A DNA stretch of 64,000 nt from the sequence record NC_061447.1. The stretch is one strand, 5' to 3'. The notes below the pieces were generated by a model that was not told where the DNA came from, ran no database searches, and saw only the letters and a list, made by a program, of their open reading frames with translations. Shown piece after piece: positions 29,503 through 34,272 of this stretch (its first letter is position 1; every line of letters begins with the position of its first letter). The position numbers and the translations under genes are program-made.

Positions 29503-29708
29503 ATAGAAAGATGATCGCCTGGTTCGCTTTGGTGATCTTCTGCGTGGTGGGAGTGGTTGCTTCCACCGTCGCACTCAATCACTACAGCTTCTTGTTGAGC
29601 ACGTTGCTCACAATCGTATTCGGCGTTGGCCTAGTTATCTGCGTGAAGTGCTTAGACGCGGCCACATGGGATTACTGCGTTAAGAAAGGAAAAGAAAAGA
29701 ATGGCTAA
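29499..29708 (+). CDS. small two-TM membrane protein
   Basis: Two hydrophobic stretches. Confidence 0.72.
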   Translation: MNRKMIAWFALVIFCVVGVVASTVALNHYSFLLSTLLTIVFGVGLVICVKCLDAATWDYCVKKGKEKNG

Positions 29709-30234
29709 ATCACTTGGTGTTTACCTGACGTATATCTTGCGCCATAAGCCACAAGATATCGGCATCGCAATGGACACTCAGGGTTGGGTGTCTGTGCATG
29801 ATCTGCTTGAGAAGGCTCGTTATGTAAAACCAGTCACTCTTGAATCGCTGACAGCCGAAGTGGAGTCAGACAACAAAGGCCGCTTCGAGTTCAACAAAAA
29901 CAAAACGCGCATCCGTTGTGTTCAGGGTCACTCGGTTGAGCATGTGCTTTTGAACATGCAGGCGTGGACAGACTGGTCGCCGTTATATCACGGTACGGCA
30001 GAAAAGAACATCTCGTCTATTCAACATGACGGCATCCTCAAGCGCAAACGCAAGCACGTCCATTTGAGCAACGATATCGAAACTGCTCGACGTGTTGGTC
30101 AACGTCACGGCGTACCTGTTGTGTTTCAGATCGACACGCTGTCCATGATTACTCACGGCTATAAGTTCTACCGTGCTGAGAACGGAGTCATCCTGACCGA
30201 GTACGTGCCGTCCCGTTATATCCGACTGGTGTAG
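29701..30234 (+). CDS. kptA: RNA 2'-phosphotransferase (Tpt1/KptA)
   Basis: LRHKP..IG..MD..GWV, DNKGRF, IRCVQGHS, LYHGT, RKHVHLS, RHG.PVV, NGVILT. Confidence 0.93.
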   Translation: MAKSLGVYLTYILRHKPQDIGIAMDTQGWVSVHDLLEKARYVKPVTLESLTAEVESDNKGRFEFNKNKTRIRCVQGHSVEHVLLNMQAWTDWSPLYHGTAEKNISSIQHDGILKRKRKHVHLSNDIETARRVGQRHGVPVVFQIDTLSMITHGYKFYRAENGVILTEYVPSRYIRLV

Positions 30235-30236
30235 TT

Positions 30237-30650
30237 ATGGAGAAGACGTACATGACACACTGGGGATCTCGGTATGTGAGATCTCCAACGGGCAAATGGT
30301 ACTCTGTTCATGGTCGCGAAGGTGCCTGGGTGACGAATCGCTACGGCACTTCATTCTATCGTAGCGGCACAGAGGTGTGGCGAGACATATCTCCTGCCTC
30401 TTGTAGGAATCTGGAGCGTGAGTTTCTCAAACGAACCCGCAATGACTTCAAGGATAATAAGAACAAGTACAACCACTGGGGTAAGGTAGTGCTGGTGATT
30501 GCACGTCAGTCGGAAGAAGAAAAGAACCCGCACACGTCAGAGCTTGCTGAGATGCTCGAAGCGCTTAGACAGACTTTCTATGGACAGAAGGTACAGCAAC
30601 TAAGCACAATTCTGGACGAAATAGGTCTTACAGACAGATATCGTTCGTGA
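30237..30650 (+). CDS. hypothetical protein
   Basis: ORF in run; 3' end contains promoter P4. Confidence 0.7.
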   Translation: MEKTYMTHWGSRYVRSPTGKWYSVHGREGAWVTNRYGTSFYRSGTEVWRDISPASCRNLEREFLKRTRNDFKDNKNKYNHWGKVVLVIARQSEEEKNPHTSELAEMLEALRQTFYGQKVQQLSTILDEIGLTDRYRS

Positions 30651-30656
30651 TATAAT
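30604..30656 (+). promoter_or_regulatory. box promoter P4 (within end of upstream CDS)
   Basis: GCACAATT-CTGGACGAAA-29 bp-(TGA)TATAAT. Confidence 0.8.
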
Positions 30657-30705
30657 AGAGATGAACGCTAGACACTCGTTTAGCTACTTACATGAGGACA
30701 TGTAT

Positions 30706-31029
30706 ATGAAAAAGAAAACTGCTGCTCAACCTACAATCGAAGGTCGCGTTTTTACTCTTTTCAGTGCCGAGCAAATTCCGCCTGAATCGACTACGCCGTT
30801 TGCTGATCGTGATTCCTTCCTTCCTCTGTTACGTAGAGTTCAGGAAAGTTCTAGGCTGGAACGCATTCGTGGTATGTCCTGCTGTCCATACTGCGGTGAG
30901 ATGATGATGCTTGGTGAATATACCAAAGACAACTGGCTCTGGTCTTATTCTTACCAGCACATGATCGAACACCACAACGTAAAGCCGTCCGCAGAATTTA
31001 TTGCCTACGTTGAAACTGCTTCCAACTAA
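30706..31029 (+). CDS. small putative Zn-binding protein
   Basis: CPYC ... HMIEHH; GAGG RBS. Confidence 0.7.
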   Translation: MKKKTAAQPTIEGRVFTLFSAEQIPPESTTPFADRDSFLPLLRRVQESSRLERIRGMSCCPYCGEMMMLGEYTKDNWLWSYSYQHMIEHHNVKPSAEFIAYVETASN

Positions 31030-31056
31030 TCTGAATTTTACCTGAGGAACATGTAC

Positions 31057-32550
31057 ATGAAAAAGATTAAACACGCTTTCCGTCTGACCGACCTGGTTAA
31101 TATTGAAAAAGTCGATACCGTTGATTATTCCCAATTGCATCACGGTAAACGTGCTATCATTGTTGGTCGTGAGCTTGACTGTCAAATGTACGATCTTCAC
31201 ATCGAAGGTGTTGGCGTTCATCACATGCAATACCCAGAAGAATGTTTGTCGCTCATTAAGCGCAATCAGGGTGAGATGCTCGACAAGTGGGAAGCTGGTA
31301 AGTACGGCAAGAAGAAAAAGAAAGAGCGCGAGATCCCTAACGTGCTGCGTAACTTCACTGCTATTCTGCCTGTGACCTGCAACGCCGATTGTTCGTTCTG
31401 TCCTGAGAAGGAGATGGAAAACAAGGCGCCTCAGAAAGAGTGGCAAGACAAACTGATTGCTGCGATTAAGACGCACGGGCATCGCGTTGACCACGTATCA
31501 ATCTCAGGCGGCGAACCTACGCTGCGTATGAAGTACCTGTTCGAAACGATCGACCAGATTCAGACCAAAGCACATATGTATAAAGTCGGTCTGACGTCGA
31601 ACGGTCAGTTCCTTGAGAAACCTAATCAGTTGCTGACGTTCCTCGACCTGAACACCAACGAGATGTTGGAAAGCAAACTGTCGCATCTGAATATCAGTAT
31701 GCACTCGTTCGACCGCGAAAAAGCAAACAAGATCATGGGCGTCAACTATACGTGGACTCTCGAAGACCTTGCTCGCTTCCGCCGTCAGTTAGGCCGCAAG
31801 CTGAGTTTCCACATCAACTTTGTTATCAACGAACAGAACATTGATAACATCGAGTGGGAGTTCCGTCAGGCCAACGAGTTCATGAAAGAGAATCAGTGGA
31901 TTGACGTTGTGTTCCGTGTTGACTACAACAACAAAAAGCTGAACAAAGAACTGCGTAAGTATGGTCTGGCTGTACAGGCAGCGCGTGAAGCAAAACGACC
32001 ACGTGATAAGAGCATCAAATACTTAGCGCCTAAGATCAAGGAGCCTAAGCTGATCGAGTTGTTTAACTCTATCTTCGACGGTAGCTTCTACGATGATTTG
32101 ACCGAAGAGACTATGCCTGGACTTGGCGATACGTTTACAACCGCATGTCCGTCCTGCTTCACGCATCGTAGCACAGACCTCGGTAACAGCTTCGCATACC
32201 TGAAAGCGTCTTCATACGAACCGAACGAAGACGAAGAAGAATATACCGAGATGGTATTCCACATGGACGGCAACTTGTACTTCGACTGGTCACGCAAAGA
32301 GCCTGTGCCGGAAATGAAGGCGAAGACTAAAAAGACGAAGCGTTTCGACTTCGAGTTCGAGCAAAAAGGCGAACATGATGCACCTAACGGTGCTGCGCTT
32401 AAACTTGAACAGGGCAAGAAAGCCAAACCTGTCCGCGTTAAGAAGGCCAAGAAGACTGAGCCACAGGGCTACCCAGATAGCTGCAACTATTCTTCTCCGT
32501 GCAGTTACTCGCGTGGTTCGTCTTGCAATTTCGGCAGCGGCATGTGCTAA
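31057..32550 (+). CDS. radical SAM enzyme with C-terminal Cys/Ser/Gly-rich tail
   Basis: CNADCSFC (CxxxCxxC), ISGGEPT, LTSNG, NISMHS; tail DSCNYSSPCSYSRGSSCNFGSGMC. Confidence 0.88.
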   Translation: MKKIKHAFRLTDLVNIEKVDTVDYSQLHHGKRAIIVGRELDCQMYDLHIEGVGVHHMQYPEECLSLIKRNQGEMLDKWEAGKYGKKKKKEREIPNVLRNFTAILPVTCNADCSFCPEKEMENKAPQKEWQDKLIAAIKTHGHRVDHVSISGGEPTLRMKYLFETIDQIQTKAHMYKVGLTSNGQFLEKPNQLLTFLDLNTNEMLESKLSHLNISMHSFDREKANKIMGVNYTWTLEDLARFRRQLGRKLSFHINFVINEQNIDNIEWEFRQANEFMKENQWIDVVFRVDYNNKKLNKELRKYGLAVQAAREAKRPRDKSIKYLAPKIKEPKLIELFNSIFDGSFYDDLTEETMPGLGDTFTTACPSCFTHRSTDLGNSFAYLKASSYEPNEDEEEYTEMVFHMDGNLYFDWSRKEPVPEMKAKTKKTKRFDFEFEQKGEHDAPNGAALKLEQGKKAKPVRVKKAKKTEPQGYPDSCNYSSPCSYSRGSSCNFGSGMC

Positions 32551-34008: not shown

Positions 34009-34272
34009 ATGGCAGTAGGTTTTGTCAAAGACGATGGCGTGAACGATACCATCGAAACAAACGTGCTGAACGAGATTGACCGCGCTCGTTCAGAACTTCA
34101 AGGCGTAGGTTCCGACTACTGCGTCAACCCTGACTGCGGTGAAAAGATTCCTGTAATGCGTAAGCTCGCTATGCCGAACGCGCGTTACTGTGTTAACTGT
34201 CAGGCAGCGCACGATGGTACTGCTAACGTCGGCTACAATCGTCGTGGCTCAAAAGATTCCCAGCTGAGGTAA
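34009..34272 (+). CDS. ybiI: DksA/TraR C4 zinc-finger protein, YbiI-like
   Basis: MAVGFVKDDGVN..., C....CGEKIP..R..A.P....C..CQ, C-terminus GYNRRGSKDSQLR matches E. coli YbiI as recalled. Confidence 0.88.
   Translation: MAVGFVKDDGVNDTIETNVLNEIDRARSELQGVGSDYCVNPDCGEKIPVMRKLAMPNARYCVNCQAAHDGTANVGYNRRGSKDSQLR

Follow-up and report, generated by a model that had tools for sequence, protein, structure and literature searches.

A jumbo-phage radical SAM enzyme with a tethered C-terminal cysteine tail

Why would a phage-encoded radical S-adenosylmethionine (SAM) enzyme end in a short, cysteine-bearing tail held on a lysine-rich tether? The question is raised by one gene in the 64,000-nucleotide stretch of DNA analysed here (the window), which corresponds to bases 186001-250000 of Erwinia phage pEa_SNUABM_33 (MZ443779.1; NC_061447.1), an Alexandravirus and jumbo phage of 263 kb whose host is the fire-blight bacterium Erwinia amylovora. 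The 497-residue product runs from an SH3-like N-domain through a radical SAM core, a beta-hairpin domain with a CPxC motif and a lysine-rich tether to the cysteine tail (Table 1). Peptide-acting radical SAM enzymes are a large source of natural products and cofactors; nearly always they rely on SPASM-type domains and on precursors encoded separately. A sequence-only reading of the window had proposed that enzyme and fused tail form a self-modifying system of the RiPP kind (a peptide made by the ribosome and modified after translation) or, alternatively, that the tail is a metal ligand. Comparisons across the family indicate that the tail is a selected functional module and a dedicated partner of the radical SAM enzyme, present either on a tether or as a separate small protein, an arrangement that recurs in large phages by the hundred.

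A cysteine tail marks the family

The last 27 residues of the protein hold cysteines 476, 482, 490 and 497 in C-x5-C-x7-C-x6-C spacing, the terminal residue itself being cysteine, and include three C-x-[YF] units (C-N-Y, C-S-Y and C-N-F); no tail cysteine is followed by glycine. Translation confirmed what the sequence-only reading had described here, a terminal 27-mer with this spacing and three Cys-x-aromatic repeats. For the window tail alone, three C-x-aromatic units appeared in 0.46% of composition-preserving shuffles (probability 0.0046). No tandem repeat lies beneath the tail in the DNA, where the repeated residues are encoded by different codons; a DNA-level repeat as the origin of the tail is thus ruled out, the repetition existing only at the peptide level. 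Compared with phage SNUABM_1, the 27 tail codons show six synonymous differences and one non-synonymous difference.

Cysteine tails follow linkers of variable length in 13 of 13 cultured-phage homologues (from Alexandravirus, Sasquatchvirus, Rivsvirus and a Yersinia phage). A database search gave 66 homologues, nearly all on contigs of jumbo-phage size, and a tail, mostly with two or four cysteines, is found in 63 of the 64 that retain the end motif of the core. It ends exactly in C-x-[YFW] in 38 of these 63 close homologues, and within the close family it is present in all 20 IMG/VR loci. The post-core regions of the 63 homologues contain 149 C-x-aromatic units, compared with 15.4 ± 3.7 expected from composition-preserving shuffles. 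This motif excess, the lack of a DNA repeat and the mostly synonymous differences together argue that the tail is selected at the peptide level, and the codon comparison indicates that selection is purifying rather than diversifying. On these sequence comparisons, the tail is a hallmark of the family.

We searched 1.84 billion representative proteins with a profile built from the family. Matches at E < 1e-3 numbered 2,692, of which 360 also passed E < 1e-10 and 26 passed E < 1e-30; the 360 superfamily entries are clusters at 50% identity. Scores fall sharply below the close family, and there follows a large set of proteins of 270-450 amino acids that retain CX3CX2C, GGEP, an N-I-S-R-H motif, CPxC and an end motif finishing in D-W. 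At least two cysteines lie within the last 30 residues in 118 of 138 superfamily representatives (86%), and the last cysteine is 0-3 residues from the C-terminus in 113 of these 118 tailed representatives. The sequence-only reading had asked whether tail composition is conserved while its sequence varies, and both the close homologues and the superfamily follow that pattern. Cysteine spacing in superfamily tails is mostly 4-9, and the residue after cysteine is usually glycine, which is also the commonest residue at that position overall (106 of 232 cases in the close family; 197 in the superfamily). Many close-family tails end in RCGY or RCGF. Phenylalanine swaps freely for tyrosine, and more distant tails have no aromatics at all. 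Since superfamily tails share the C-terminal cysteine pairs, C-x-aromatic appears to be the jumbo-phage version of a general Cys-pair tail.

The number of cysteines per tail ranges from 2 to 10, with a single cysteine in only 2 of 189. It is even in 130 and odd in 47 of 177 tails, with two cysteines in 75 proteins and four in 43. In one sub-clade, two cysteine pairs are set apart by an extra lysine-rich stretch.

The chain from residue 437 to its end, most of the tether and the whole tail, is taken as disordered. In an AlphaFold2 model of the enzyme built from a 54-sequence alignment (mean predicted local distance difference test score (pLDDT) 82.6), pLDDT is 65, 50, 43, 40 and 41 in successive ten-residue blocks from residue 421 to 470, and it stays below 50 from residue 437 to the C-terminus. 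The lysine-rich flexible linker proposed from the sequence alone is therefore present and disordered in the model, but spans 53 residues and not about 70. Across the family the linker has a median length of 44 residues (5-95% range 14-90), with indels in the alignment. A [KR]-F-[DG]-[FL]-[DE] motif, R-F-D-F-E in the window protein, recurs in 14 close homologues at a similar distance past the core and may be a docking motif.

Cultured-phage members of the family are limited to jumbo phages of Erwinia, Dickeya and Yersinia. Among 185,579 species genomes there were seven strong matches, all on contigs of metagenome-assembled genomes (MAGs), six of 5-13 kb and one of 84 kb; few family matches come from bacterial or archaeal MAG contigs. 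The neighbourhoods inspected were all phage-like; among their genes were, for example, Acb1 and those for a T4-type portal, prohead protease and major capsid protein, alongside numerous small open reading frames (ORFs). From the alignments, the family is defined by a CX3CX2C core, an invariant CxxC hairpin, an H-x-D/N-G-x-L-x-x-D-W end motif, a variable tether and the tail, for which two or more cysteines in roughly the last 30 residues count, whether the tail is fused or encoded by a neighbouring ORF. All of these features are present in the window protein, in sequences P0001-P0064 and in most of sequences P0067-P0206.

A conserved CxxC pair co-occurs with the tail

The enzyme is a member of the radical SAM superfamily by its cluster motif, its GGE motif and its partial triosephosphate isomerase (TIM)-barrel fold, and the CxxxCxxC and GGEPT motifs of the sequence-only reading are indeed found, at residues 108-115 and 151-155. 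Pfam matches comprise PF04055 (Radical_SAM) over residues 108-267 (E 1.2e-13; 52 bits against a cut-off of 29.5) and PF13353 (E 1e-6). Conservation was read from 54 aligned close sequences and 78 aligned superfamily sequences. G151, G152 and E153 are invariant in the close family; in the superfamily the aligned G-E is invariant, and the neighbouring G and P are nearly so. The core is modelled with pLDDT mostly above 90, and its closest Protein Data Bank (PDB) folds in Foldseek are viperin, viperin-like proteins, MoaA, SuiB and BlsE (E 1e-9 to 1e-8). Individual viperin and MoaA matches range from E 8e-10 to 3e-8, the viperins with 20-24% identity across about 200 residues. A profile search of PDB sequences matched the core region only (viperin E 9e-6, MoaA E 2e-4).

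Past the barrel, the beta-hairpin domain is modelled with strands at residues 360-364, 367-371, 380-385 and 398-401 (pLDDT > 90). Its conserved positions are K383, E388-P389, E398 and the motif H402-x-D-G-x-L-x-x-D410-W411-x-R413, and a PDB sequence search with the C-terminal domain alone detected no relative. The CPSC motif that the sequence-only reading had also picked out occupies residues 364-367. C364 and C367 are invariant in the 54 close sequences, as is the aligned C..C in the 78 superfamily sequences, and CPxC is the sole conserved cysteine pair outside the SAM cluster.

We tallied core CxxC and tail in 198 sequences with the end motif, counts that are not phylogenetically independent. 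Core CxxC and a fused tail occur together in 168 sequences, CxxC without a fused tail in 21, neither in 8 and a tail without CxxC in 1. The 8 sequences that have neither come from bacterial genomes (Ruminococcus, Dysgonomonas, Bacteroides and others) and form a more distant group. The co-occurrence of CxxC and tail points to C364/C367 and the tail thiols being functionally linked, and CPSC is likely to be a docking, metal or redox site for them.

Also seen was a distant radical SAM group (loci L132-L160, on MAG and isolate contigs of Ruminococcus, Dysgonomonas, Bacteroides and Bacilli) with an H-P-N-G-N-L-x-x-G-W end motif. Its tallied members are without the core CxxC and the cysteine tail. 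Some proteins of the group carry a further, fused N-terminal region about 350 amino acids long, and the group matches no named family.

The peptide can be encoded as a separate open reading frame

Some superfamily enzymes end directly after the D-W motif. Among loci with enough flanking DNA, seven such tail-less enzymes adjoin a small ORF of 60-101 amino acids (Table 1), which encodes a helical or coiled-coil N-part (40-60 amino acids), a basic stretch and a Cys-pair C-terminus. These split peptides come from the group of 21 sequences that have CxxC without a fused tail. Because split ORFs carry linker and tail beside tail-less enzymes, the two appear to be an autonomous module, and in the loci compared this module always adjoins the enzyme gene. 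The leader-then-core layout of the split ORFs, whether upstream or downstream of the enzyme gene, resembles that of RiPP precursors. An encoded precursor-like peptide dedicated to the enzyme is present, fused in most members and as a separate ORF in seven tail-less relatives. No split peptide ORF was found within the available sequence at the tail-less IMG/VR loci L049, L061 and L066 or at L021 (a 2-kb contig).

At L018, the enzyme ORF (1957-2766) and the peptide ORF share a frame with one stop between them, which suggests recent fission or possible read-through. Selenocysteine recoding was considered and rejected, since in 12 enzymes, tail-less or split, the in-frame sequence beyond the stop codon contains no UGA-interrupted tail. 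A T4-like metagenomic phage (P0197, a JGI contig; L023) has its tail-less enzyme and small ORFs amid head genes, with those for portal and prohead protease on one side and those for scaffold and major capsid protein on the other. Some family members may accordingly be head-associated.

Comparison with known families

Pfam, PHROGs, NCBIfam and PADLOC, searched with the window protein and ten distant relatives, returned generic radical SAM matches or sub-threshold matches to viperin, MoaA, HxsC and NrdG, and no superfamily member carries a specific family name. Literature searches found no described phage radical SAM enzyme with a cysteine tail; the AD1 phage paper lists the gene only as 'Radical SAM superfamily protein'. 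What the comparisons describe is a Cys-pair peptide coupled to a minimal radical SAM enzyme, in most cases as a fusion across a long disordered tether, and for this pairing we found neither a curated family nor a describing paper.

Among solved structures, viperin, with the prokaryotic viperins, and MoaA have the nearest folds, and they also match the core best in the profile search; the C-terminal domain of the phage enzyme, in contrast, has no detectable relative. Membership in viperin or pVip was rejected: scores are sub-threshold (NF038283, 49.2 bits against 180; TIGR04278, 24.6 against 450), and in the PADLOC pVip models the match covers just positions 9-152 of 257 and 12-170 of 262, leaving the C-terminal nucleotide-binding part unmatched. 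In MoaA, too, catalysis involves a flexible C-terminal tail, and the barrel is followed by an auxiliary cluster. Membership in MoaA was likewise rejected, because the phage enzyme has only CX2C of CX2CX13C with no conserved third cysteine, ends in Cys and not in Gly-Gly, and scores 46-53 bits with the NCBIfam MoaA models against cut-offs of 231-325. Given these failures across the family, the annotation of the phage Y3 homologue (Y3_274, L009 2507-3850) as 'GTP 3',8-cyclase MoaA' is unsupported; it is probably an over-annotation that should be dropped.

The SPASM maturases that install Cys thioethers or crosslink aromatics (AlbA, CteB and PapB among the sactipeptide and ranthipeptide synthases; SuiB/StrB) also use a radical SAM core on small peptides rich in Cys, Gly and Ser, and SuiB is among the structural matches. 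They differ in having a seven-cysteine SPASM/twitch motif and a separate peptide, whereas the phage enzyme has only CPxC, no RiPP recognition element (RRE) and a fused peptide. Weak matches to NCBIfam maturase models are confined to the core region and fall far below cut-off (PapB, 19.7 bits against 340; SkfB, 33 bits in a relative against 300; twitch model NF033640, 18.9 against 170). Membership among SPASM/twitch peptide maturases was rejected on the auxiliary cysteine set and the RRE. In the MftC/MftA and PqqE/PqqA systems, which lead to peptide-derived cofactors, the target of the radical SAM enzyme is the far C-terminal region of a small peptide with an aromatic residue, and many phage homologues similarly end exactly in C-x-[YF]. 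Unlike the phage family, MftC and PqqE have SPASM domains and a PqqD-like chaperone, and the PqqE model scores 30.5 bits against 381.

NrdG/NrdD and PflA/PflB share with the phage family a small activase-like core with the cluster motif near the domain start, and some phage-family tails resemble R-C-G-Y. A glycyl-radical enzyme with its activase was nevertheless rejected, as the window tail has no Cys-Gly, a glycyl-radical enzyme barrel is absent and the signature spacing does not match.

Redox-active C-terminal cysteine tails occur in the class I ribonucleotide reductase large subunit, the large thioredoxin reductases and mercuric reductase. There, too, a cysteine pair at a flexible, Gly-rich extreme C-terminus works with a CxxC-type pair in the body of the protein. 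These enzymes are not radical SAM proteins, however, carry one pair compared with the 2-10 cysteines seen here, and are not known to have a separate small-protein form of the tail with a helical N-part.

In borosins (OphMA-like), the enzyme is fused to its own C-terminal core peptide via a flexible linker, and split relatives exist (PMC8429565; bioRxiv 10.1101/2021.12.24.474128). The phage radical SAM family has the same fused/split duality. Borosins are SAM-dependent N-methyltransferases whose product is released by a protease, whereas the phage family is radical SAM, shows no release machinery, and its tail modification is putative.

Possible roles of the tail

Our preferred reading, tentative and rated somewhat short of even, is that the tail may be the enzyme's own tethered substrate, its thiols engaging the CPxC site. 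With the tether, the tail could reach back to the barrel of its own chain or to that of an adjacent subunit. Tail thiols would then engage the invariant CPxC hairpin beside the barrel and might serve as ligands of an auxiliary iron-sulfur or metal site, or complete it, as a substrate cysteine does in CteB, a maturase that forms thioethers. The 5'-deoxyadenosyl radical from the CX3CX2C cluster could abstract a hydrogen beside a cysteine, at the small residue at +1 or the aromatic at +2, and the outcome would be an intrapeptide thioether-type crosslink or a peptide-centred radical. We infer CPxC docking, the auxiliary metal, the hydrogen-abstraction site, the product and the use to the phage from sequence and model; judged from gene neighbourhoods, that use is probably host takeover or counter-defence.

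We favour the substrate reading because of the split leader-plus-core layout, the variable number of units and the borosin precedent. The prevalence of tails in the close family and of Cys-pair ends in the superfamily, the invariance of the core CxxC and its co-occurrence with the tail, and purifying selection on a peptide that has no DNA repeat beneath it also count in its favour. A cysteine count that ranges from 2 to 10 argues for repeated core units rather than a fixed ligand set, and a separate small ORF beside seven tail-less enzymes fits what would be expected of an autonomous partner or substrate.

Several observations weigh against it. A SPASM or twitch cysteine motif is present in nearly all peptide-crosslinking radical SAM enzymes, and none was found here, with no Pfam SPASM match at E ≤ 0.1; C364 and C367 are the only cysteines of the C-terminal domain and the sole conserved ones past the barrel. 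There is no RRE (PqqD-like winged helix): the N-domain is all-beta, shorter relatives are without it, and no neighbour is PqqD-like. AlphaFold2 leaves residues 437-497 undocked, and the tail is conserved, not hypervariable, inside the Alexandravirus clade. The nearest folds, viperin and MoaA, act on nucleotides and not on peptides, and a dithiol relay would account just as well for the predominance of even cysteine numbers and for the core CxxC. The neighbourhoods inspected contain no gene for a protease, an exporter or immunity, so any product would stay attached to a protein of about 55-60 kDa (estimated from 497 residues). The proposed chemistry as a whole draws only on sequence and a predicted structure. 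Of the self-modifying RiPP system proposed from the window sequence, the enzyme and its peptide partner stand, the latter borne out by the split ORFs; calling it a RiPP system exceeds the evidence, because SPASM, RRE, protease or exporter, docking in the model and diversifying selection are all missing.

A dithiol shuttle, the main rival, which the sequence-only reading did not consider and which fits about as well as dynamic metal ligation, is possible though doubtful. The tail pair or pairs would re-reduce a catalytic CPxC during turnover on another substrate, possibly a nucleotide or RNA, with CPxC being oxidised or donating hydrogen or electrons and the tail being recharged by host thioredoxin or glutaredoxin; such shuttling is what the C-terminal cysteine pair does in class I ribonucleotide reductase, and the redox-active C-terminal tail in large thioredoxin reductases. 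Much of the family pattern is consistent with this: the invariant core CxxC co-occurs with paired tail cysteines, nearly every tail has at least two and even numbers predominate, the cysteines are spaced 4-9 apart in flexible Gly/Ser-rich sequence with the last at the extreme C-terminus, the disordered tether is long, and the tail is conserved and not diversified. The nucleotide chemistry of the nearest folds and the recurrence of RNA-repair-type neighbours (Tpt1 in the window; Thg1, dual-specificity phosphatase, PTH2 and CCA-adding enzyme elsewhere) point the same way. However, up to 10 cysteines and odd counts in 47 of 177 tails have no precedent among known shuttle tails, the conserved aromatic two positions past cysteine in the jumbo-phage clade is left unexplained, and the helical N-part of the split forms would be superfluous for a mere reductant. 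Few conserved basic residues are available for triphosphate binding, and we know of no radical SAM enzyme that uses a dithiol relay.

The same co-occurrence of CxxC and tail, with at least two cysteines in nearly every tail, would also suit a static metal site in which two tail cysteines and C364/C367 permanently hold [4Fe-4S], [2Fe-2S] or zinc and the tail is structural. CPxC sits at a hairpin turn like a metal knuckle, and the fold neighbours include MoaA and twitch-domain enzymes, which bear auxiliary clusters after the barrel. We nonetheless consider permanent ligation improbable. The tether is disordered and varies from about 14 to 90 residues, cysteine number (2-10) and spacing (3-12) are not fixed, one sub-clade splits its two pairs with a lysine-rich stretch, and the module can exist as a separate protein. 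Invariant H402 could complete the site without the tail, and AlphaFold2, which often pre-forms cysteine metal sites, does not place the tail at CPxC. The metal-ligand alternative of the sequence-only reading thus survives in a dynamic form, given the CxxC/tail co-occurrence, and fits poorly in a static one. It is very improbable that the enzyme is an activase placing a stable glycyl-type backbone radical on its own tail. Glycine is the commonest residue after cysteine, the RCGY and RCGF endings recall the glycyl-radical loop of anaerobic ribonucleotide reductase, and activase models match weakly (NrdG2, E 9e-10; PflA, E 1e-5), but these scores are far under the curated cut-offs, no window tail cysteine precedes glycine, C497 is the final residue, and there is neither a glycyl-radical enzyme barrel nor the R-[IVT]-[CSA]-G-Y spacing of the glycyl-radical signature. 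Little credence, finally, goes to a tail unrelated to catalysis, whether a docking or targeting element (for a host protein, a metal or a location) or compositionally biased filler. Disorder, the RFDFE linear motif in the tether and the one relative whose split peptide lies amid T4-type head genes would agree with such a role, yet the tail co-occurs with the CxxC of the catalytic domain and the split peptide gene always adjoins the enzyme gene; filler is excluded by the roughly tenfold motif enrichment over shuffles and by purifying selection.

If the tethered-substrate reading is true, the enzyme would represent a new self-modifying architecture and a new kind of phage accessory function. A broader proposal, speculative and on balance unlikely, is that a self-contained module of radical SAM enzyme and tethered or adjacent Cys-pair peptide is spread among large phages of many hosts and makes a peptide-borne crosslink, a radical or a peptide-derived small molecule for use during infection, host takeover and counter-defence being examples. 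In that case the module would be the first autocatalytic (enzyme-fused) radical SAM peptide system and the first native to phages, with a minimal CPxC site replacing the SPASM domain. A dithiol shuttle, if true, would give radical SAM enzymes their first redox tail of the ribonucleotide-reductase kind and would point to a previously unknown reductive reaction that large phages run in their hosts. Natural fused, split and tail-less variants exist, and through the family a function can be sought for a 'hypothetical protein' that is conserved in jumbo phages of fire-blight and soft-rot bacteria.

Table 1. Features of the enzyme gene and its surroundings in the window, and split peptide ORFs at other loci
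Feature	Coordinates	Strand	Basis or remarks
Tpt1/KptA-type RNA 2'-phosphotransferase gene, two genes upstream of enzyme	29701-30234	+	Pfam E 1.5e-44; PHROG E 1.5e-66
Sigma-70-like promoter match, CTTACA, 18 nucleotides, TG-n-TATAAT	30627-30656	+	Consensus scan, 10/12 matches
Optional upstream gene, 107 amino acids, C-C-P-Y-C ... H-x3-H-H (C2H2-like metal site)	30706-31029	+	Separate ORF
Whole enzyme gene, radical SAM protein with tethered Cys tail	31057-32550	+	497 amino acids; QZE58151.1; GenBank 'hypothetical protein'; translation checked
SH3-like/KOW-like five-strand beta-barrel N-domain, residues 1-82	31057-31302	+	AlphaFold2 and Foldseek
Short Lys-rich inter-domain linker, residues 83-96	31303-31344	+	Sequence; pLDDT falls to 59 at residues 81-90
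Radical SAM core, partial TIM barrel, residues 97-345	31345-32091	+	Pfam, AlphaFold2, Foldseek, PDB profile search
CX3CX2C, C108/C112/C115, ligands of the SAM-binding [4Fe-4S] cluster	31378-31401	+	Invariant in 54 and 78 aligned sequences
GGEP SAM-binding motif, residues 151-154	31507-31518	+	Alignments
C-terminal beta-hairpin domain, residues 356-417	32122-32307	+	AlphaFold2 and alignments
CPSC, C364/C367, at hairpin turn	32146-32157	+	AlphaFold2 and alignments
Disordered Lys-rich tether, residues 418-470	32308-32466	+	53 amino acids; 16 K/R, 8 D/E; variable among homologues in length and sequence
Short linear motif R-F-D-F-E, residues 429-433, within tether	32341-32355	+	Sequence
C-terminal Cys tail of 27 amino acids, residues 471-497	32467-32547	+	Translation, shuffle tests, homologues
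DksA/TraR-type C4 zinc-finger gene, few genes downstream	34009-34272	+	Same position in AD1, phB78, Y3, SNUABM_5 and the Yersinia phage
Split peptide ORF	L018 2770-3018		
Split peptide ORF	L020 5991-6230		
Split peptide ORF	L022 5011-5316		Enzyme in close family
Split peptide ORF	L023 1-177		Upstream of enzyme gene
Split peptide ORF	L059 2629-2910		Upstream of enzyme gene
Split peptide ORF	L063 3752-3934		
Split peptide ORF	L067 3825-4022		

N-domain and gene neighbourhood

The N-domain is restricted to the Alexandravirus/Sasquatchvirus-type clade and a small number of relatives from metagenomes; it is missing from the homologue in Rivsvirus and from every shorter member of the family. In the AlphaFold2 model it has strands at residues 13-16, 32-38, 44-49, 53-60 and 64-68 and a helix at 72-79. 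Modelled alone it forms an SH3/KOW-like barrel with weak Foldseek matches (YorP, Spt5/NusG KOW and SH3, all at E ≥ 0.01), and a PDB sequence search with this domain alone returned nothing meaningful.

In the inspected stretch of the record (about 18 kb), none of the proteins is annotated beyond 'hypothetical protein' (40 of 40 features). The whole 64-kb window contains no transfer RNA genes and no Rfam matches at the gathering threshold. Homologue neighbourhoods, where compared, showed no conserved partner gene other than the peptide ORF. Besides the Tpt1/KptA-type gene of the window, genes for a Thg1-like protein, a dual-specificity phosphatase and a metallophosphatase lie near the enzyme at L018, and genes for PTH2, a CCA-adding enzyme and a Macro domain at L014. 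Such RNA-repair or RNA-end-processing neighbours could indicate an RNA-related role or merely a shared accessory-gene region. The DksA/TraR-type gene downstream recurs at the same position in other phages (Table 1).

The sequence-only reading, whose interval opened at 30604, had placed a promoter and a small CxxC/HxxxH protein ahead of the enzyme. Both are present, the promoter match preceding the small gene and the enzyme gene, but sigma-70-like sites in the region are no more numerous than in shuffles, and the small gene is separate and optional. Its 107-residue product has no family match in Pfam, PHROGs, NCBIfam or PADLOC, and with 87% mean identity in six phages it is more conserved than the enzyme. 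Gene comparisons indicate that it is not an obligatory part of the system, being missing upstream of the enzyme in AD1, SNUABM_32, Y3 and Alexandra. The enzyme gene has an alternative ATG start at 31051. An 18-nucleotide direct repeat (30698-30715 and 31049-31066) flanks the 107-residue gene and spans the start regions of both genes, and the small gene looks like a cassette gained or lost through recombination.

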